Source of the DNA: Anthoceros angustus
Lineage: Eukaryota; Plantae; Anthocerotophyta
DNA length: 64,000 nt
NCBI GenBank assembly: GCA_010909165.1
Contig: MU008162.1
Span: 1,860,001-1,924,000 of the forward strand
Reading direction: 5' to 3'
A model generated the notes under the pieces. It was not told the DNA's origin and made no database searches. It saw nothing but the letters and a program-made list of their open reading frames with translations. Shown in pieces: positions 1,603 through 63,023 of the stretch. The stretch's first letter is position 1; each line of letters opens with the position of its first letter. Made by a program: the position numbers and the translations under genes.

Positions 1603-3309
1603 AATATTGATGTGTTTAAGGTACGGCGGCAGGTATGAACTGTGATGCACAAGCATGTTCAGCCAATTGTTTGAATCGTTGTTCGTCAGGCCCAAGGACA
1701 ACTCCCGTGCAACGATCTCATTGAGTCGTGACAATTGATAGAGACAAAATATGCCAAGGCGCTGCAGCTAGCATTGATGTATTAGGGTAGAAGACGCACA
1801 ATTGATATTATGGCCAGTGAGGACAAAATGTGGACTCCTTCCGTCATTCCATGGACGCTGAGCTGAAGAAGGCAACGTTCAGAGCTGAACGTTGAGGGCA
1901 AGGTTCAGGCAGAGCTGAAGAAGGCAACGTTCTGACCTTGTGGTGATGTCATATTCCTCTCAGCATGAGGTTTGCAAATTCTTGCCGGAACGGAATGCAT
2001 GTGATATTACTCTCAGCATGAGCTAGGGTTACAGATTCTTGTCTGACTGGGAATGGAGACATGAAGCTATGGGTGTCGACTCCTAAGGGTTCTGCTGTCG
2101 TTCCAGGTGCAGGCAAGGTTGGTCCAAATGTGGTGTCTACAGAACTTTGCAACATGCTCGTCCTTGTTGAACAGCTTCAAATAAACGAATCTCTCTGAAT
2201 GTTTGTGAATGTCAGGAGCTGTGGATGTTTAGGAATAGACAGCTTCTTGGATATTAACGCTTTGACCTCGTAGTGCTTTGTAATGCCTTTTCTATTGATG
2301 ACGGTAAAACAGATCAGGCAACTAATCCTGGTCTATATCAGGCTGGTTGTTAGTAGGATTGTTCTTAATCCTTGCTTGTTCAAAACCAAAATAGCAAAAC
2401 ACTGGCAATAAAGCCAAAGAAGGCATGCTTTTTCGTACAAACGCATTGGGCTGGCTGCTTCAGCAGATGGCTCACAATGCAACCAACGCACACCTGTTGC
2501 TGCGGGGAGCCGTTCTCAGATCCCTCCTCATGACCAAATGTTTCCATCCCTCGGGTTGTTGCAGTGTGAAGCTTAGAGCGTGCTCGAAAGGTGTTCGACC
2601 GGTTAGCCTCGACAGAGAACGTGGTGACATGGAATGCTCTGCTAAATGGCTAAGCCAGCATAGCAACAGCACAACCTGCTTGATGTCCTGGGTCGGGCAG
2701 GCCCCCTCGAAAGCATGCTGGAAACTTTGCCGTTTGAGAACAATGTGGTGGGATGGACGTCAGCTGACGCAGCAAGGAACGGTGCACCTGGTGCACCCCA
2801 GTCGGCGTAACACTCCAGGGACTGGTCCTCAATTCCTCCTTAGTGCCTTTTCCTATGGCTGGCATCCCACAGCCAGGTTCCAAAGTACTTAATACAGGCT
2901 TTCAATACTCTTCGTGATGGCATCCTGATCTGGGATGAACCTATGAGTGATGCCTGCCAGGAGACACTAAACAGTCAGGTTGGACAGTGCACCGTGAAGG
3001 GTTATTTGCCCAACGCCCCGATCACAAGCCCTCAGTGGGGACGGAAGAAGTTCCGGATGATGAGCAGGAGGAACCCAACCCTATGGCGAGTGCCCTTGCA
3101 GATGCTGGTCGCAAAAGCAAGAAGGAGGTCACCTTCCGAGAACTACCTGAGCCGTCATGACTACATGAAGAACCGGCAAAATAAGCTCTCCTCCAGCTGA
3201 GCACCCTGAGGAGGGTATGATTCTGAGAAGATGCCTCCAGTGGAACTACACTTATTTTGTTTGCCCAACTTTCGGCAGGGAGGCTGTTCTCGGTGGTAGA
3301 ATCATATTA

Positions 3310-4510
3310 GTGATAGCATGCTGAGCTTCGACTTCAGCAGGATGGGAATGAAGGATACGACAGAGAGAGCACCAACCAAGGTATATCTCCTCCCCATTTG
3401 GGGCATGTTCCATCCCCAAAGGACAATACTCAGGTGCCTCGACATTGACAATCCCCTGATTGAGATCCTGACGCCTTTCTGTCGCTAGGTGACAGGAGTC
3501 ACAAAAGTGAACAGTTCCAAAGCAAAACTAAGTGGGCCACGGTGCAGCAATATTTGCACTTGAATTCCATGTAAGCAGTGCCATGGCCTGGTACAGTACA
3601 TATTCCATGGCCAGCTGCGGCAGCATAACGGCGGCCACACATAAACTCGCAGGGATCATAACCGCGTTCCCTGCACGATCAAGCATGATTGTACAAGCTC
3701 GCAAACAACTCTCGAAGGTCTTGAATCAATCAACAAGAGAAAATGACGTCCTTTGCCCAGCCCTTACTGTTCGTTTCTCGCTCGCGGTTGCGAATCCCAC
3801 CAAAATATGGCTCGTTGCACTCAAAGCACAAATAATACTGACACTTCCTCATGGCAGCTATCACCAACTCCTCGGTTACTTCTAGCTTTGCCTTGTTTAC
3901 CTTCCGAGTGGAAGGCTTTGATGAAGCCTCCATGTGGAAGCGCTCTTCTTCCATCTGCTCCATCCGGAGCTGCTCCTTTACCGTGTGCCTAACCTGCACA
4001 GCCAAATGTCTCAACGGACATGCTGCAACATTGATTGCTCTTTGTTGAGTTATTCGACGAAGCATGAATTGCTGATTAAACGTATGACATGAATGTCTTG
4101 GTGAAGCAATACCCCGTTCATATTATGGAAAGCGATCCTCACTCGAGGTAACGGACGCTGATTTCGGGGCCTGGAAACCCTCATCAAAGTGCACCATATG
4201 CCCACAGGTCAGTGAAGATCTTCTGACCAGCACATGGATTTGAGTGACAGCAATCCTGCGGAAAGTAGGAAAGGGTGTCACATCAGTTGCCCGACATGCC
4301 AAAGCATTCTCACCACCGTGAAGGAAAAGAGTGCAGAAATGAGATCGGGGTTAGCAAAATCATCTTTAGACAGGGAAGGCAAGTACGATCGTGTCGAACT
4401 CCTCCACAGCGATGCCCACATTTCAAAGTCCGCAAATACGTAAGCCTGCGCAGCTTCCTACGGTCCAACTCCAAGCAAACAGCAGAAGCAATATTCAACA
4501 CCTGCACAAA
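3310..4510 (-). pseudogene. Decayed C-terminus of a MYCBP2/Highwire/RPM-1 (PHR)-like E3 ligase: B-box, RING remnant, tandem-cysteine domain
   Basis: Minus-strand translation gives motifs collinear with MYCBP2: [103 protein letters not shown]. Several frameshifts; one GT-AG intron at 3671-3767. Confidence 0.85.
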
Positions 4511-5067
4511 GTCTCTTATTATTCCCGCACCAGGAAAGATCCATGAACTTGCCAGTCATGATGACAAGCTCGCCCCTTATCTGTTCTTCAGACATGGACT
4601 TCAATTTTCTGAGCCTCTGACTCTCAGCACTGGAAGAACGAACAATTCTTTCACAGAAAATGCACTTGATCGCTGATATCTCCTCCTCATACTGCTCGCC
4701 AATTTCCGGAAGCCTCTCATCACATAACTTCTCGACTTCTGATGATCTGGAGCTTGCCCTTTATGTTGCGAGAAACTGCTGAAGCGAACACATTCTACTT
4801 TGAGTCTTCTATTTGCAGCTTACCCCTTGAAATGCTTCCGAAAACATTTTGATACAGATTGTGATGACACTAACCTTCCCATTCCTCAATTCGTAAGCAG
4901 AGAAGTTTTGAAACCAGAAATGCTTCTAAAACCAACGATGCTTCCAGTACCGAGGAGCGCTGAGTCACACAATCAATTGCAGACGAAAAGAAATCTGCAG
5001 GGAGTGCTTAAGAAGTTTAGATGATCCGGAGTTCTACACGGCTTGGGAGGATCGACCTGTGACGGAA

Positions 5068-5142
5068 CATCTTGCATTGCCACATGTGAGCCATCTTACA
5101 TTGCCACATGTGAGCCATCTTGCATTGCCACATGTGAGCCAT
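5068..5142. repeat. 24-bp tandem repeat x3
   Basis: Unit catcttgcattgccacatgtgagc, three near-identical copies. Confidence 0.95.
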
Positions 5143-6334: not shown

Positions 6335-6650
6335 ATCTGAAGAAGAAGAAGTCTTTTATAGTCTGCTTGGATGGAATTTTCCTATCATAGCCCTTGGTAC
6401 TTCACCACTTGTACCATGGTGTGCCTAAGCTGCTAAGTTGGCTACACCAAAGGGCATCCACTCCCTCTAGGCACCCCATGTAAGTACAGATCCAAGCGCA
6501 GGACATGTAAGTACCCATCGAAGCGCAGGACATGTAAGTACCGATCGAAGAGCGGGACATGAAAGAACCGATCGAAGCGCAGGACATGTAAGTACCGATC
6601 GAAGCGCAGGACATCTAATTACCGATCGAAGCCGATCAGTAATTACCATT
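6335..6650 (-). mobile_element. Copy of the microsatellite-tailed dispersed element, with an internal minisatellite expansion
   Basis: (gaa)n tail followed by cttgtaccatggtgtgcctaagct...ccaaagggcatccactccctctaggcacccc, homologous to 55440-55575 and to the reverse complement of 31270-31400. Confidence 0.7.
6477..6632. repeat. 27-bp minisatellite, ~5.7 copies
   Basis: Consensus catgtaagtaccgatcgaagcgcagga. Confidence 0.95.
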
Positions 6651-9099
6651 CAAAGACCATATGTTTGCTGAAGCGGTGGCAAACGAGGGGTGGCCATGGC
6701 CTTCACCAACCATGTGTTTATCTGACCTTAACTTCAGTGATTACCAATCAAAGGGCTATTACCATTCAAAGGCATGTGCCATAGGTGGTCTGACTCGTCT
6801 TGCCGAAGCTGTGTGGCCCGTCGCTACAGCTCATCCTCGATTGTTGTTTCAGCTGTGAATCTTCAAGCTGGCCATCTTCAACGGCAGCAACAAATAGTGA
6901 TAATGCCTCTTCTTTCATTAGCGACCGCTAAGGTCGTACTCGCTCGTGTCCCCTCGCCTTTGATGACACACAGACGGGACTCACCTACAGAGTGGAACGG
7001 CCGTTCCACAGTGAAAGAGTTGGCGTGACATCTGATGCCGATGTTTTCGATAAAGTGGAAGCAACGCATTTTACCAACCCATGGTACATTGGCAAAGCCC
7101 AAAATGGGCACTCCAAACGTTGAAGCATGTTTATGTGGATCTGCTCCATGTAAATCTTGGCGTTGCAGTAAGGTCTGACTGTTACTTGCGACAAAGGAAC
7201 AGAGCCAAGCCTCCACTGATGAAATTTCAACCCCTGTGAGTACTGCACCCTTGAACTACATGCTTTCCAAATGTTCAGGAGCATGCAGTGGCAGCGTACA
7301 CGTAACGTCCATCACATATGTACCCAAAAATGCCGACATTAGTAGCTACCTTCCTTACATACAGCCTTGTGAACTCCGTCCATACCTTCGGTGAACAATT
7401 CCCTCACCTTGGCCACCTTACAGAACTTCCCAGGTGCACCAAGCCCTATGTCACACCCGCCATCGGCTCCACACACTTCACCAGCTCGTCTACCAGTTTC
7501 ATGCACCCTGAAGCCTCTCCGATATCCCATCCCATCGGTTGGTCTTGAAGCTGGATTCACTTCCGCACATTCTGCCTGTGTTCAAAGATTCTTGACAGCC
7601 GCTGCTCGGTGCTCACACAGAAAGCCTTTGTGCCGACCGGTTTGTCTGCTTCGAACACTGTCACAACGTCCATCGCTGAGGCCTTATGGCAACAGCGACC
7701 AACAGCGACCACGCGGCACGCATTCGGATTGCCCCGGCACCGGCTGAGCAAAACCAAAACCGGACATCCCGTGATGATGGAGACAGCAAACACCACTCCT
7801 TCCCGACTTATCTCAATCAGCTCAGCCTCACATCTGTGCACATTATCCCGCTTTCTTAGTGGAAGCAGGCGGCCTCCAAGATCCAAGAAACAAACAAAGT
7901 GCCATTTCCCATCCCTACGAAAAAAAACGAAGTGCTATTCCTGTGAAGCAGATCACTTTCGTTTTCTTCCCCTCGCACCGAGGACGTATTTCTCATATGA
8001 TCTGCCCGCACAACACTACACAAGCAGCAGATCGGAGATAACAAAAGCTAGATCCAGGAATCTCGTACGCCTCCAAGTAGGCCGTGTTCCTTGTTTCGAT
8101 AGCATTCCAACATTCCATATTTTATGCGTATGCGAAAAGCTCAATACGTAAAAAGATTCTTGCCTTGCAGGCAGGGAGCAAAAAAAGTTGCCTACCTCCA
8201 GGTCCACCACGGGATTTCCTCTCCACAGCGCCATGCCCTGGGGCTAGGAGGCTCGCTCAAAGAGTTTATTACAGTCGAGAATGGAAAGATGCGCGGTGCC
8301 GGCTCGCCCGCCCCTGGATCAAATCTAAGCAGTCCGAGAAAAACCTCCAACAAGTTGCCCTCGCCTGCTCGTTTGCTGTGGTGGCCTTCTCGCAGACGTG
8401 CGAAGAAGCGGGACGCCCGGCCCCAGCTCCCGGCTCCCAGCTTCCAGCCCCGCGCGTTTTCTTCATGCAACAAGAGACGCAGAACCGGGGCAGGCTGTGC
8501 CCGAGGCGGGTCCCCGCGAATGCCTGTGAGCTCAGCGCCCACGCGCTCGCCCACGGGCGTCCCGACCCCACGCCCCGCCGATGTCCTCTACGATTCATCC
8601 CGAAACAGTGAAAAGGGGTGTCACATACACATCATATGGATGGCGGCCTATCACATTGGCCGGATGGTGTGCATGCCCTGGTGCAAGCAGCAAAGTTGTC
8701 AAATATGACAGGAAAATTTAGTCCACGTGGATTATAATGCACTTTCATTCCTCTACAAATTAATAATCTCGCACAAGGGAATTCGACGTGTCCCAAGTTT
8801 AATAGTCTCATAGTCTCGCACAAGGGAATCCGACGTGTCATATATACATACAGTATGTATATATGTACATATGTACATAAGGCCAAGGCGCGTTAGTGCG
8901 TTAACGAGGCCTGTACGAAACAGGGAACAGGCCTCGTTAGCAGCACGTGGGCGTCAGGAGCCCGGAAGGCCCCTGGCGTGTCCTAATGCCCCCATCCTTG
9001 GGGCCGCCCTGGCGTGTCCGGGTTTTTTTTAGGCCCGGTTATCGAATATGCCGGATTGGGGGTGATAAGCGCGGTTGCTTATCGCGCTAACCGGGGAGT

Positions 9100-26098: not shown

Positions 26099-29000
26099 CT
26101 ACCCACATGAACTACCTCCTACAGAAATGCCCACCCATGACTCCGAGTCCAGATGTCTCGCATACCCAGCGTTCTTCATTTCGGAAATGAGCTGTTTCAG
26201 CCTTGCATACACAGCTTCTCTCTCAGGGTGTTTTTTATCCCCGACCAAGAAAGTGTGCACTATGCCGTCCGTGTCTGTCCACCAGCTCTGGCCCGGCTCC
26301 TTCCAGGCCTTCATTCCAGTTCTCCTGGCCTGCATCTCCTCTGCCTGCTCCCACATGTTGGCACTTTTGTATATGTTTGACATCAACACGTATGCGGCAG
26401 TATCGTTCTCGTCCAGCTTCACTGCTTCCTGAAAAGCATGAAGTCCCACCTCCACATTGCTCCACATTCGACAAGCACCCAGTAGGCTGTGCCAGACTGC
26501 AGAGTCGGGCCGTATAGGCATTGTGCTAACCAAATCCAGTGCCTCGTCCAGCAGGCCTGCACGACCCAGGAGATCCATCATGGTTGTGTAGTGCCCAACT
26601 GTGGGACTGCTGCCGTACTGTTTGGTCATGGCCTCGAAGTACTCTCTCCCATCCTTCACTAGACCGGCATGACTGCATACTGTTAGGACACTTAGGAAGG
26701 TGACGCCCGTTGGCTGTATGCCATCATCTCTCATTCTGCGAAACAAGTCAAAGACCACTTCACTGTCTCCTTGACGGCTGTAGCCTGCAATCAAGGCATT
26801 CCAGGCCACGACATCTCTTTTGGGCAGAGTCTCAAACACTTGCTGTGCATGAAACATGCTCCCAGACTTTGCATACATATTTATCAAACTGATCGCTACA
26901 AGCACATCAGATTGGAGCCCCTGTTGTGTGATCTGTGCATGAAGCTGCTTTCCCAGACGCAAAGCTGCCACGTTTGCACAAGCCTGGAGGAGGCACACAA
27001 ATGTTACAGCATCGGGTGCAACAACGGCTTCTTTTTGCATAGCTCTGTAAAGACGAAGTGCTTCCTGCCCCATACCCTGCTGGGCATAGCCTCCAATCAT
27101 GGCGTTCCACATCACCACATCTTTATGAGGCAACCCATCAAACACGCCCTGAGCATCTTCCAAGTTGCCACGATTTACATATCCTGCTATCAGAGCGGTC
27201 CATGTCACCACATTCTTTTTTCCAAGTCCGTCAAACACTCTTTGGGCATCTTCCAAGCTGCCACACTTTGCATACATGTTCACCAGGCTGCCGCCTACTT
27301 TCACATCAGTCTGAAGGCCTCGTTCTCCAATCTGTGTATGTAGCTGTTTCCCAGTCTCCAAAGCAGGTGCACCCACAGTTGCACATGCCTGCAGGAGAGA
27401 CACAAATGTTACAGAATCAGGCACAGCAGTGCTTTCTTCTCGCATTGCATTGTAAATGTGAAGAGCTTCCTCTCCCATGCCCTGCTGAGCGTATCCTGCT
27501 ATCAGGGCTGTCCACGTCACCACATTCTTTTGACCAATTCCGTCAAACACTCTTTGGGCATCTTCCAAGCTGCCACATTTTGCATACATATCCACCAGAC
27601 AGCTACAAACGAATAGATCAGGCTCAACCCCGCTGGCCAACACATCAGCATGCAACTGCTGCCCGGTTGTTAAGTCTCTTGCCCTTGCACAAGCCTGAAG
27701 GGCTGCTGCAAAGATATGGCCGTCTGGATTCACACTTGACCTGCGCATCTGATGATAGAGTTGTATGGCCTGGTTATCTTGCCCGTGTTTGACATGTGCA
27801 GAGATTAGCGAAGACCAAATGAAGGCGTCTGGTTTGGTGACCATGGTGAACACGTCCATCGCTTCTTGCAAACTGTCATGAGTAGCATACATTCGCAACA
27901 TACAGTTGGACAAGAAGGTGTCCGACTTGTACTGCCCTCTCATAATGAGAGCATGGACACAACGACCCAGAACCAGATCCTTCTGAAGCCCACATCTTTT
28001 CAACACAGTATAAAAGAGGGATCGTGGAATATGACGGTGTGTTTGTACCAAAACTCCTAGAGCCTCAACAGCCTCAGCAAGGTGCTCCTGCTGACATAGT
28101 TTCCTCACAGTATCAGCCGTTATGCCGCTTTCAAGTTCTGTAGGCCTCCGACAGTCATGATCATGTGGCACATTCAAGTTGTTAGTACAACCCATCTGCT
28201 TATCCACAGCTACAAGCTGCACGTCTTTCTTCATTTTCTGGATCAGCCGTTCCAGCATTGCATATATACCTTCACTCTCAGGATGCTTTGCATCCCCAAC
28301 CAAAAAGCTGTGCACCAGTCCGTCCATGTCTGTCCACCAGCTCTGGCCTGGCTCCTTCCACGCCCCAATACCTGTTCTCCTCTCCTGCATCTCCTGTGCC
28401 TGCTGCCACATCTTGGCACCCCTATATATGTTCGACATCAACATATATGCTGCAGTATCGTTTTTGTCTAGATTCACTGCTTCTTTGAATGCAAGAGTTC
28501 CCACTTCTACATTGCTCCACATTTGACAAGCACCTAGTAGAGTGTGCCAAACTGCAGCATCAGGAAGTAAAGGCATTGACCTTACCAAAGCTAGTGCCTC
28601 GTCCAGTTGGCCTGCACGACCCAAGAGATCCACCATGCATGTGTAGTGCTCCACGGTGGGAGAGATGCCATGGTGCCTGCTCATAGCCTCAAAGTACTCT
28701 TGCCCCCTCTTCACTAGACCTGCATGACTGCATACTGTTAGCAGACCAACGAACGTGACGCCAGTTGGCTGAGTGCCATCCTCTCTCATTCTGTTAAACA
28801 AGTCAAAGACCACTTCAGTGTCTACCTGATGGCTGTAGCCTGCAATGAGTGCATTCCAGGCGACGACACCTTTTTCGGGCAATGCCTCGAACACCTGCTG
28901 CGCGCGGACCATGCTCCCACACTTTGCATACATATTTATCAAACTGACAGCAACAGGCACATCAGCCTGAAGTCCTTGTTCTACAATCTGAGCATGGAGC

Positions 29001-30565
29001 TGCTTTCCGACATGCAAAGCTGCGACATCTGCACATGCCTGCAGGAGGCACACAAATGTCACAGCATTCGGTGCAATAATGCCTTCGTCCTGCATACCCC
29101 TGTACAAATGAAGGGCTTCCTGCCCCATGCCCTGCTGGGAATATCCTGCAATCATGGCATTCCACGTCGCGACGTTCTTGTGAGGGAGCCTGTCAAACAC
29201 TTTCTGCGCGTCTTCCAAGCTGCCACACTTCACGCATCCTGCTATCAGAGCATTGCACGTTGCCACATCCTTGTGAGGGAGTTTGTCAAAGACCCTTTGA
29301 GCGTCTTCCAAGCTGCCACATTTAGCATACATGTCTACCAAGCTGCAGCCTACTACCAAATCAGCCTGAAGTCCCTGTTCTCCAATTTGTGCGTGAAGCT
29401 GTTTTCCCTGTTCCAAAGCCAGGCTTCCCACACTAGCACATGCCTGCAGGAGGCACACAAAGGTAACACAATTGGGTGCAGCAAAGCCGTCTTGTTGCAT
29501 GGCATCGTAGAGCTGAAGGGCTTGCTGACCTTTACCCTGCTGGGCATATCCTGCTATCAGAGCTGTCCAAGTTACCACATTTTTGCGACCAAGTCCATCG
29601 AACACTCTTTGCGCTTCTTCCAAGCTGCCACATTTTGCGTACATGTCCACCAATCCACTACTAACAAACAGATCAGGTTCACCGCCACTCGCCAACACAT
29701 CTGCATGCACCTGCTGCCCAGTTTCCAAGTCTGCCCCCTTCGCACAAGCCTGAAGGGCTGCTACAAACACATGGCCGTCGGGCTTCACACTTGACCTGCG
29801 CAGCCGATGGTACAATTGTATGGCCTGACCATCCTGTCCGTGTTCAACATGCGCAGAGATTATGGAAGACCACATGAAGGCATCTGGTTTACATACCACG
29901 GTAAACACGTCCATTGCTTCTTGCAAGCTGGCATGAGTAGCATACATCCGCAGGATGTGGTTGCACAAGAAGGTGTCCGACTCATACCCCCCTTTCACAG
30001 TCAGAGCATGGACCCGACGACCCAGAACCAGAAGCTTCTGACTCACACATCCTTTCAGCACAGTATACAAGAGGGATTGAGAAACATGATAGTCTGTCTC
30101 CACCAGAACTCCCAGGCCCTCAACAGCCTCGCTAAACTGCCCCTGTTGACATAGATGGCTCACCGTATCAGCCGTTACATCTGTCTCGTATCCTGCAGGC
30201 CTGCGAAGTCCAAGATCATTCCGCATGTTCCAGTTGGAAGTAGTGGCCCGACGACCCATCCGCATATCCACAGCTGCCAGCTGCACATCGACCCAACCTG
30301 GCTTGTCCCAGAGGACCTCCTGGGACTCACAGCTCTGCCGGAAAACGGCCTCGTCACATCCTGAAGTCAGACCAGCCAACCAATTTTCCCTGTTCGGATC
30401 CAGGAAACCCGTTGCCACCCGAGGCCGTGTGCCCCTGTATGCGGATGTAGTGCAATGGGCCAAGCAGCCATGATTAGCACAAGCACATCGTGAAAATATG
30501 GAGACCCCAACACCCAATTCCCCTACGCCAGCTCCAGCGCAAGCTGAACCAAGTGTCCAAATCAT
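26099..30565 (-). CDS. PLS-class PPR protein with two complete PLS-E1-E2-E+ modules in one ORF (~1488 aa); putative organellar RNA-editing factor, no DYW domain
   Basis: Repeated P/L/S motifs. Two E/E+ regions, each with EHY/GHYTxMxDLLGRAG and KEPGQSWWTD...HxFLVGD. First ATG at 30565 within the ORF 26099-30589. Confidence 0.92.
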   Translation of the reverse strand: MIWTLGSACAGAGVGELGVGVSIFSRCACANHGCLAHCTTSAYRGTRPRVATGFLDPNRENWLAGLTSGCDEAVFRQSCESQEVLWDKPGWVDVQLAAVDMRMGRRATTSNWNMRNDLGLRRPAGYETDVTADTVSHLCQQGQFSEAVEGLGVLVETDYHVSQSLLYTVLKGCVSQKLLVLGRRVHALTVKGGYESDTFLCNHILRMYATHASLQEAMDVFTVVCKPDAFMWSSIISAHVEHGQDGQAIQLYHRLRRSSVKPDGHVFVAALQACAKGADLETGQQVHADVLASGGEPDLFVSSGLVDMYAKCGSLEEAQRVFDGLGRKNVVTWTALIAGYAQQGKGQQALQLYDAMQQDGFAAPNCVTFVCLLQACASVGSLALEQGKQLHAQIGEQGLQADLVVGCSLVDMYAKCGSLEDAQRVFDKLPHKDVATCNALIAGCVKCGSLEDAQKVFDRLPHKNVATWNAMIAGYSQQGMGQEALHLYRGMQDEGIIAPNAVTFVCLLQACADVAALHVGKQLHAQIVEQGLQADVPVAVSLINMYAKCGSMVRAQQVFEALPEKGVVAWNALIAGYSHQVDTEVVFDLFNRMREDGTQPTGVTFVGLLTVCSHAGLVKRGQEYFEAMSRHHGISPTVEHYTCMVDLLGRAGQLDEALALVRSMPLLPDAAVWHTLLGACQMWSNVEVGTLAFKEAVNLDKNDTAAYMLMSNIYRGAKMWQQAQEMQERRTGIGAWKEPGQSWWTDMDGLVHSFLVGDAKHPESEGIYAMLERLIQKMKKDVQLVAVDKQMGCTNNLNVPHDHDCRRPTELESGITADTVRKLCQQEHLAEAVEALGVLVQTHRHIPRSLFYTVLKRCGLQKDLVLGRCVHALIMRGQYKSDTFLSNCMLRMYATHDSLQEAMDVFTMVTKPDAFIWSSLISAHVKHGQDNQAIQLYHQMRRSSVNPDGHIFAAALQACARARDLTTGQQLHADVLASGVEPDLFVCSCLVDMYAKCGSLEDAQRVFDGIGQKNVVTWTALIAGYAQQGMGEEALHIYNAMREESTAVPDSVTFVSLLQACATVGAPALETGKQLHTQIGERGLQTDVKVGGSLVNMYAKCGSLEDAQRVFDGLGKKNVVTWTALIAGYVNRGNLEDAQGVFDGLPHKDVVMWNAMIGGYAQQGMGQEALRLYRAMQKEAVVAPDAVTFVCLLQACANVAALRLGKQLHAQITQQGLQSDVLVAISLINMYAKSGSMFHAQQVFETLPKRDVVAWNALIAGYSRQGDSEVVFDLFRRMRDDGIQPTGVTFLSVLTVCSHAGLVKDGREYFEAMTKQYGSSPTVGHYTTMMDLLGRAGLLDEALDLVSTMPIRPDSAVWHSLLGACRMWSNVEVGLHAFQEAVKLDENDTAAYVLMSNIYKSANMWEQAEEMQARRTGMKAWKEPGQSWWTDTDGIVHTFLVGDKKHPEREAVYARLKQLISEMKNAGYARHLDSESWVGISVGGSSCG

Positions 30566-31194
30566 AGTGCCCACATTCTTGCACAGCAATATTCAAGGTT
30601 TCCATCCAGTGTACATATCTTCACGATACCCAAACTGCTGCTTCTTCATGAACTGCACATGGTGCACACCTAGCTGCACAGCAGTGCGCAGGATACAGTC
30701 TGTTGGCTATCTCCTTCACTTGCGTTGATATAACCTCCTGGTTGGAGATCCTATGTCAATTTGTTGCTCTGCATGGAAGTTGGATAAATGTGCAACATTC
30801 TGCTCGTTGAGGTTGGACAACACATGCAGGCAATCTAGGATCTCAATCTTGCTCTTTGGCAGCCAGAGATGCAGATGTTCAGTGTGGAATGGAGGGCCCC
30901 TTCATAATCGGAGCTATGATGCATCCAGTGATCTAACTTCTGGCCCTGAGCACCTAGATCAAATTGAAAGATTACTCCACCTCCAGACGAGCGAGGTTAT
31001 GCCCCAAATCATACGAGGGCAACCCTCAAGTGTGCGGTCCTTCTTCGATCTTAAAGCGATGCTATGTTATGGACTCTCGGATAACCAATAAGTAGGAGCC
31101 TTTCGGTTGATAACCCTCAATCCCAAATTCTCAAGGCAAATCTCAGATTGAGCCGATTGAACTTGTTCGTGACATCTGAGTCATGTCGGAAGCC

Positions 31195-59048: not shown

Positions 59049-60019
59049 CTAATCGAACAAGCTGAAGCCCATGTCGTCCTCCGACTCTTCAGCGGGTTCC
59101 GCCTTTTCTTCCTCGTTGGCTGCTGCAGCAGCAGGTGCAGCAGCTGCTGATGTCTCCACCGGAGCGGCGGCCACCGCAAATTTGCTCGGATCCTTCAAGT
59201 ACTCCTTCACCTTCCCCGCCTGAGGGAATGAATAGCCTGTGTCAATGGCAATAGCCAACACGTTCTTGTAACTGTTGACGAAGAAGTGTGGTGCTGCCGC
59301 CAGTGTCGGGTAGTCCAGACCCAGAGAAAGTGCTGCCACTGTCGATATTCCAGCAGTGAGCTTGTCCATCAAGTCATCTTCTGTCAGATCCAACACCGCA
59401 GGATCGAACACCGACCCATTGTCGAAGATGCTCTGAACCACAAGCCCGTATGAGAAAGGACGGATTCCCAGCTTAGCCAACAATGCTGCCTCGGAAGACC
59501 CGACCTTGTCACCCTTCTTGATAAGCTCCACCGGGGCTATGATTTCCACAGTCCCCTTGTTAATCTTCGTGGGGATGTTGAGCACCTGGAAGAAGGAAGT
59601 CTGGGAGGGATCCAGCCCAGTGTTCCCCGGAGGAACCACCACATCAATGGGTGCCACAAGACCCACACGGGCAGGTGCTCCCACTTTGTACTTGGGTACT
59701 TGGCAACCTCTTCCCTCACCTCCTTCAGATCACCCTTGGTGAATATCAGCCCAACGTTACCCACCAGCAACGGTATCAGATTCAAGATAGCTTCGTTACC
59801 CATCTTCTCAGCGTGGATTCGAATGGTCCTCTTCATCATCGTGTTTTTCCCCATCAGCACCACGGACTCAGGCCTCAACCCCTTCCTAATGCCCTGCAAC
59901 TGATTGGACCCAACATTGTCGGCAAGACAAATCAGGACCTGATTGAACTCCTCCAACAGGTCGCACATCTTCCTGTCATACGCCTGTTTCTTCTCCTGCT
60001 TAGTACCTTTGAAACCCAT
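59049..60019 (-). pseudogene. RPP0: 60S acidic ribosomal protein P0 (uL10) paralog, frameshifted by an 8-bp duplication
   Basis: Near-identical to 62061-63023. gtacttgg is duplicated at 59688-59703, breaking the frame at AKY/KVG. Confidence 0.9.
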
Positions 60020-60442
60020 GGCTCCTTCCCGAGCTGCATCAGGTACCGCCAATTAGCTTCACCAACACCGCCAACAACAGGCGACATAGCACGACGACCA
60101 ACGACGTGACTACAACAAGGAAGCCACCCCAAGCTCAGTAAAATCCGGGAAAAGAACAGCAGAGCAAAATTCACCCTCGTACCACAGCAGGCAGGAGATA
60201 CTCTCAAAGAAACTAATTAACATGGAGAGCACGAAATCAATGAACTCCAAGGACCGCACCTGTTCAGAACGAACCCCCAAGCTCCGGCGAAGGAAAAACG
60301 CTCCGCTTCACAAACAAAGGAGAGAAGGATATACCCACACCCTGCGATCGACAACGAACCGGGGGCCAAGCCGACGCTGTCGGCATGGCGGGCAGACGTA
60401 CTACGTCGTGCTAGTTCGCTACGTCGTGCTGCGGCTTTCAAA

Positions 60443-62060: not shown

Positions 62061-63023
62061 CTAGTCGAACAGGCTGAAGCCCATGTCGTCGTCCGACTCT
62101 TCAGCGGGTTCCGCCTTTTCTTCCTCCTTGGCCGCTGCAGCAGCGGGTGCAGCAGCTGCTGGTGTCTCCACCGGAGCGGCGGCCACCACAAATTTGCTCG
62201 GGTCCTTCAAGTACTCCTTCACCTTCACCGCCTGAGGGAATGAGTAGCCTGTCTCAATGGCAATAGCCAACACGTTCTTGTAACTGTTGACGAAGAAGTG
62301 TGGTGCTGCCGCCAGTGTCGGGTAGTTCAGACCCAGAGAAAGTGCTGCCACTGTCGATATTCCGGCAGTGAGCTTGCTCATCAAGTCATCTTCTGTCAGA
62401 TCCAAGACTGCAGGATCGAACACCGACCCATTATCGTAGATGCTCTGAACCACGAGCCCGTATGAGAAAGGACGGATTCCCAATTTAGCCAACAAAGCAG
62501 CCTCAGAGGACCCGACCTTGTCACCCTTCTTGATAAGCTCCACCGGGGCTATGATTTCCACAGTTCCCTTGTTGATTTTCGTGGGAATGTTAAGCACCTG
62601 AAAGAAAGAAGTCTGGGAGGGATCCAGCCCAGTGTTCCCCGGAGGAACCACCACATCAATGGGTGCCACGAGACCCACACGGGCAGGTGCTCCCACCTTG
62701 TACTTGGCAACCTCCTCCCTCACCTCCTTCAGATCACCCTTGGTGAAGATCAGACCAACGTTACCCACCAGCAACGGTATCAAATTCAAGATAGCTTCAT
62801 TGCCCGTCTTCTCAGAGTGGATACGAATGGTCCTCTTCATCATCGTGTTTTTTCCCATCAACACCACAGACTCGGGCCTCAACCCCTTCCTGATGGCCTG
62901 CAACTGATTGGATCCAACATTGTCGGCGGCACAAATCAGGACCTGATTGAACTCCTCCAATAGGTCGCACATCTTCCTGTCATACGCCTGTTTCTTCTCC
63001 TGCTTGGTACCCTTGAAACCCAT
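62061..63023 (-). CDS. RPP0: 60S acidic ribosomal protein P0 (uL10), 320 aa, intronless CDS
   Basis: Complete ORF: [30 protein letters not shown]-terminal [14 protein letters not shown] 5'-UTR intron acceptor lies just upstream. Confidence 0.97.

Follow-up and report, generated by a model that had tools for sequence, protein, structure and literature searches.

We identified, at positions 4730–3351 on the minus strand of the analysed window (the whole stretch of 64,000 nucleotides from Anthoceros angustus), the relic of a gene for a MYCBP2-like ubiquitin ligase of the RING-Cys-relay (RCR) class. It is very probably a non-functional, 5′-truncated pseudogene of the plant's own small RING1-IBR + RCR ubiquitin ligase gene.

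Extent and composition of the relic

The relic consists of a chain of stop-free pieces in changing frames which follow one another in the order IBR tail, Cys-rich linker, RING and whole tandem-cysteine (TC) domain, collinear with the intact genes. A first-pass annotation had placed the feature at 3310–4510; the relic is slightly wider. Its parts are the following:

4650–4730, minus strand: relic of the C-terminal part of an IBR-like zinc finger (KLCDERLPEIGEQYEE..KCIFCE; family HMM positions 271–332, E 1.9e-4; A1 profile positions 32–94)
4367–4516, minus strand: Cys-rich linker, beginning RDFVQV (HMM positions 325–375, E 3.9e-12)
4120–4263, minus strand: RING remnant (tblastn and frameshift-aware alignment)
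3769–4020, minus strand: linker helix and first part of the TC domain (match to PDB chain 119–145)
3671–3767, minus strand: intron-like insert of 97 nt, GTAAG...CAG, containing stops, at a conserved phase-2 intron site in the mediator loop
3535–3669, minus strand: second part of the TC domain (PDB chain 151–192, E 2.6e-6)
3351–3534, minus strand: last part of the TC domain (PDB chain 195–262, E 2.7e-5)

When three of the pieces were searched singly against all solved structures, the sole match of each was the RING-Cys-relay fragment of MYCBP2 (5O6C/6T7F), with the chain order preserved: piece 3733–4122 matched chain 119–145 (E 0.11), piece 3502–3678 chain 151–192 (E 2.6e-6) and piece 3255–3527 chain 195–262 (E 2.7e-5). 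These ordered matches bear out the initial proposal that the RING remnant and the whole TC domain are collinear with the C-terminus of MYCBP2, and they answer in the affirmative its question of whether the reconstructed peptide would hit the MYCBP2 family; the closing motif of 23 residues that it had read was located at 3425–3357. Judged by the sequence homology of the TC domain, the relic derives from an RCR module, being collinear with 5O6C chain 119–262 and matching the family HMM with its last piece at E 4.6e-19. This HMM of 642 positions recognised five collinear relic pieces (positions 271–640), with E values from 4.6e-19 to 1.9e-4; the rest of the 64 kb window yielded no match of similar quality. 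None of the eight window pieces gave a Pfam match, RING models included: Pfam lacks a model of the TC domain, and the decay of the RING has gone too far for it to be recognised.

The IBR-like segment is the most upstream recognisable homology, with a stop just upstream of it (4763–4761). The segment that follows had been called a B-box. The Pfam B-box model (PF00643) found no match (E ≤ 0.01–1) in the window pieces or in any of ten intact plant, protist and animal family members, and the segment is a conserved Cys-rich linker. The RING remnant comprises a block of 18 residues at 4263–4183, followed by GFPGPEISVRYL at 4180–4145, and ends with RFP-stop-Y at 4134–4120, the relic of R-C-P-Q-C.

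The 270 N-terminal positions of the family had no match in the six frames of the whole 64 kb, using tblastn with three relatives and the full-family HMM. One match of 18 residues at 6467–6414 (E 0.87), considered as a possible N-terminal remnant, was taken as chance; it overlaps a high-copy repeat. That repeat, at 6364–6658, is a very high-copy element with a summed contig depth of ~6,670 versus ~18 in its flanks, and contains a 27-nt tandem repeat (6450–6658); its many loose ends and joints suggest that the genome holds numerous further copies. At 5068–5142, ~300 nt upstream of the most upstream part of the relic, there are also three near-perfect tandem repeats of 24 nt.

A long-dead pseudogene

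The reading frame of the relic is broken by at least five frameshifts and two in-frame stops. Breaks were located by frameshift-aware alignment to fern and lycophyte proteins, plus tblastn. Since the aligner, with its cheap gaps, over-splits the poorly conserved RING and helix region, we used only breaks found with both query proteins. Those given by the frameshift-aware alignment, all on the minus strand, are:

near 4517–4514, minus strand: frameshift of 1 nt, between the IBR part and the Cys-rich linker, which lie in different frames
between 4364 and 4317, minus strand: frameshift
4182–4181, minus strand: deletion of 8 residues (after HFD, in the RING) and shift of 2 nt
4144–4135, minus strand: insertion of 10 nt in the RING
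4125–4123, minus strand: stop TAA, in RFP-stop-Y
3534, minus strand: one extra nucleotide
3530–3528, minus strand: stop TAG, in T-stop-FCFG

The original stop of the gene has gone and the frame continues to 3255. Conserved residues have been lost as well. Of the RING zinc ligands, the two outer Cys pairs (first and last) are missing, the final C-P-x-C having become F-P-stop-Y, and two conserved Cys of the Cys-rich linker have been replaced, one by R and the other by Y. The upstream relay cysteine (C4520 in MYCBP2) is an Arg in the relic, encoded by CGC at 3786–3784; the aligned position, index 143 of 5O6C, is C4520 itself, and the column is invariant Cys in nine streptophyte proteins (C284). 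The equivalent of the downstream relay cysteine (C4572; 5O6C index 195) is retained as TGC at 3524–3522, in FCFG, and is preceded by a frameshift and the TAG stop. In the TC domain CGGC has changed into CGRR, and one further Cys has also gone. The terminal branch of the relic in a tree of 31 family members measures 2.61 changes per site, versus a median of 0.46. The relic is a long-dead pseudogene; the earlier view that this copy is dying correctly recognised its decay but understated it, as the frameshifts, stops and lost ligands mark a copy that is dead already.

We considered whether assembly errors could instead have produced the apparent breaks in what is really a working gene. The window does differ from one DNA run in homopolymer length at several C-runs: the contigs of this run have one C less at 2796, 3453, 3669, 4573 and 4823, the five sites inspected, all of them C-runs on the plus strand. 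However, DNA contigs from the same sample cover 2710–5104 at a depth of 17–21, equal to that of the flanks, with zero base substitutions, and because these independent contigs lack substitutions they confirm both stops and the Cys-to-Arg codon. Moreover, applying the short-read version of the five C-runs restored no frame and split two continuous pieces, so that the read version adds breaks and removes none. The missing RING ligands, the 8-residue deletion, the very long tree branch and the absence of the N-terminal third also speak against a working gene, which we consider highly improbable.

The same DNA run has one base less than the window at 2702, 6140, 6950, 7231, 7326 and 7876, in addition to the five inspected sites. 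A second run, from the same sample, matches the window at every such site that both runs cover (6950, 7231, 7326 and 7876). Given this agreement, and since no frame was restored, we kept the window sequence. The one-base differences are either run-specific homopolymer undercalls or strand-biased assembly errors; we treated them as the former, and a few single-base calls are uncertain. Contigs that are 90–95% alike touch 3299–3305, 3571–3595 and 4252–4281, which indicates close paralogues elsewhere in the genome. From the second run, one 173-nt contig falls at 3891–4063, its RNA nature being only a guess.

The relic is native to the plant genome

The RCR module is best known from animals, and many of the closest database matches of the relic are unnamed metagenome proteins, both of which might suggest a contaminant or a recent transfer of DNA from an animal or a protist. 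However, in the tree of 31 family members the relic falls among land plants, in a clade of 11 rows (SH-aLRT 99), itself nested in a green-lineage clade (support 99) apart from the animal and protist rows. The contig depth is the same as in the flanks, the intron site is common with plants and the neighbours of the relic are plant genes, encoding a pentatricopeptide-repeat (PPR) protein and the ribosomal protein P0. The tree and the depth already refute contamination or transfer, to which we leave next to no probability; the first-pass annotation had likewise taken the gene as native to a land-plant genome, and the tree, the depth and the shared intron site agree with it.

The neighbouring genes have particularities of their own. 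P0 occurs as two tandem intronless copies, one (62061–63023, minus strand) an intact ORF of 320 aa and the other (59049–60052, minus strand) interrupted near 59,600–59,690 by a frameshift or an assembly error, so that it reads as two overlapping ORFs. The P0 ORF shares 79–84% identity with named proteins from many groups of land plants, none of which is close to it. The PPR gene (26099–30589, minus strand) is a single ORF of 1,496 aa that resembles a head-to-tail fusion of two similar PPR proteins.

An old and widespread family of small RCR ligases

An exhaustive HMMER search with the last relic piece as query retrieved 88 proteins with 40–58% identity, most of them 400–900 aa long with the matching part at the C-terminus, and many of the closest being the unnamed metagenome proteins mentioned above. 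Members were found in lycophytes (Selaginella XP_024530918.1, Diphasiastrum O6H91_13G085400), ferns (Pteridium, Psilotum, Adiantum GOP47_0001568, Ceratopteris KP509_12G090100), mosses (Ceratodon KC19_2G009400, Physcomitrium patens XP_024395653.1, 674 aa) and green algae (two Chara proteins, Mesostigma and two chlorophytes). Others come from Polysphondylium, Thecamonas, Hondaea and many protists, together with animal Highwire fragments. The idea that early land plants retained an RCR lineage is thus borne out by intact relatives in streptophyte algae, mosses, lycophytes and ferns. Seed plants were absent from the 51 profile matches of a word-indexed search, in line with the first-pass annotation, which knew of no angiosperm member.

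The intact plant members are 579–691 aa long. A profile of nine intact streptophyte members matched 5O6C over chain 7–259 (E 5.8e-75), and in the nine-member alignment the columns of the two relay cysteines (C4520 and C4572) contain only Cys; the intact family therefore belongs, at the sequence level, to the RCR class. In intact members Pfam recognised RING models only, except that some protist members also matched IBR; none of them matched a B-box, RCC1 or PHR model. The family from which the relic derives consists of small RING1-IBR + RCR proteins, which are neither giant PHR proteins nor orthologues of these. A different arrangement, matching neither the giant PHR proteins nor the RING1-IBR form, was observed in a 481-aa protein of the mollusc Dreissena polymorpha labelled 'MYCBP2-like': its RING-TC module directly adjoins a Macro (ADP-ribose-binding) domain.

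The first-pass annotation had regarded the module as characterised in animals. The Physcomitrium protein XP_024395653.1 is already named 'E3 ubiquitin-protein ligase highwire-like isoform X1' in RefSeq, and other members carry the labels 'MYCBP2' (JGI) or 'RCR-type E3 ubiquitin transferase' (UniRef). This old and widespread gene family already bears labels in databases, and its novelty is lower than was assumed.

By analogy with MYCBP2, the RING of intact plant members would bind E2~ubiquitin, from which ubiquitin would pass to the mediator-loop cysteine (the C4520 equivalent) and then be relayed to the second cysteine (the C4572 equivalent) in the zinc-binding TC domain, to be discharged onto a substrate, probably onto a hydroxyl as in MYCBP2. 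The relic cannot carry out such a relay, because ~270 N-terminal residues, the frame, the RING ligands and the first relay cysteine have all been lost.

Introns and origin of the copy

The 97-nt insert (3767..3671) has the GTAAG...CAG ends of an intron, but its excision does not preserve the frame. The exon phases around it are 1+1, that is, two bases and not three, as would follow from loss of a single G at an ancestral AG/GT donor, which would be one more lesion. The Selaginella gene, mapped to its genomic locus, has four exons, and its last intron, of phase 2, lies inside the mediator loop. This intron 3 (GGKRNCGPNL/VEDQGRQYDP, the slash marking the site) falls between the GG..C motif and YDP, in the same place as the relic insert, and Ceratodon and Ceratopteris also have an intron at this mediator-loop site. 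Three C-terminal intron sites are common to Selaginella, Ceratodon and Ceratopteris: after CLPCLE, after ..LELLSLV and in the mediator loop. In Ceratopteris the gene occupies ~41 kb because of two huge introns.

The relic is too compact to hold the conserved introns that follow CLPCL(E) and ..LELLSLV in its relatives. From CLPCL to GFPGPE it has 61 codons, versus 55 in the fern. A stretch of 46 nt after CLPCLK, with a CTAAC branch-point-like motif and a pyrimidine tract, could be a remnant of intron 1. The first-pass annotation had taken the insert at 3671–3767 as a spliceosomal intron arguing for a native gene and not a retrocopy or a contaminant. The splice-like ends and the conserved site uphold the intron, but the two other conserved introns are missing, which makes a semi-processed origin possible.

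Most likely, the copy arose by a DNA-level duplication of part of the gene, which would then have drifted neutrally. A plain DNA duplicate should nevertheless carry the two further conserved introns, and their absence counts against this mode. It would be accounted for by a semi-processed retrocopy, in which a partly spliced parent mRNA with its last intron retained would have been inserted in 5′-truncated form before decaying. The lack of room for the two introns fits that scenario, as does the loss of ~270 N-terminal residues, typical of 5′-truncated retrocopies. Against it stand the 97-nt GT..AG insert, which occupies the third of the conserved intron sites, and the lack of a poly(A) tract downstream of the coding relic, where only a short A-rich run (3262–3252) occurs; the 46-nt stretch, moreover, may be what is left of intron 1. 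We regard a semi-processed retrocopy as rather unlikely and retain the DNA-level duplication as the favoured mode of origin. Capture by a transposon was also considered and set aside: neither terminal repeats nor transposase-like ORFs flank the relic.

Evolutionary significance

The relic itself adds no function and is of little importance as a locus. Its value is that of a marker, indicating that its lineage, too, had the family of small MYCBP2-like RCR ligases. Added to the genes of mosses, lycophytes, ferns and charophytes, it supports inheritance from an ancestor of the green lineage, and the family has probably been lost in seed plants. A broader reading can be offered tentatively, although as a whole it is doubtful: the relic would be a product of ongoing birth-and-death in a small multi-copy family whose intact members are active two-cysteine, hydroxyl-esterifying relay ligases. 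Outside the seed plants, the sampled lineages (streptophyte algae, mosses, the plant of this window, lycophytes and ferns) seem to have kept the family, and its apparent loss in seed plants would then reflect a role linked to a trait common to those lineages, for example motile gametes. If true, this reading would imply hydroxyl-esterifying ubiquitin chemistry, never shown in plants. The RCR family thus seems worth the attention of biochemists: our literature search retrieved no study of a plant member and no biochemistry of a protist or any other non-animal RCR ligase.

Comparison with known systems

In reviews MYCBP2 is presented as the RCR ligase and as a protein conserved from C. elegans to mammals, and the plant reviews that mention RCR cite animal work only. 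Among protists, Dictyostelium DDB_G0284853 has been mentioned in passing as 'mycBP2/Highwire-like', with a TC-domain peptide listed (PMC6743453). This protein, Polysphondylium CYY_007838 and the Hondaea 'MYCBP2' are small and end with the same RING-TC module, some of them with an upstream Pfam IBR; in our tree, these protist MYCBP2-like proteins fall outside the green clade.

The RCR module of human MYCBP2 (5O6C, 6T7F) shows the same order as the relic, namely Cys-rich linker, RING, helix and TC domain. Among the shared features, equivalents of E4534 and H4583 are presumably kept too. In contrast to MYCBP2, the relic has an Arg at the position of C4520, a ruined RING and a broken frame. The proteins differ in overall architecture too, MYCBP2 having ~4,640 aa with RCC1-like, PHR and other domains, whereas those of the plant family have 579–691 aa and no RCC1 or PHR Pfam match. 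The closest counterparts are the proteins of Physcomitrium, Ceratodon, Selaginella, Diphasiastrum, Ceratopteris and Adiantum, which belong to the same family and clade as the relic and share ~50% identity with it in conserved blocks. The moss, lycophyte and fern genes are intact and full length, with three conserved C-terminal introns, whereas the relic is truncated and broken and preserves one such intron.
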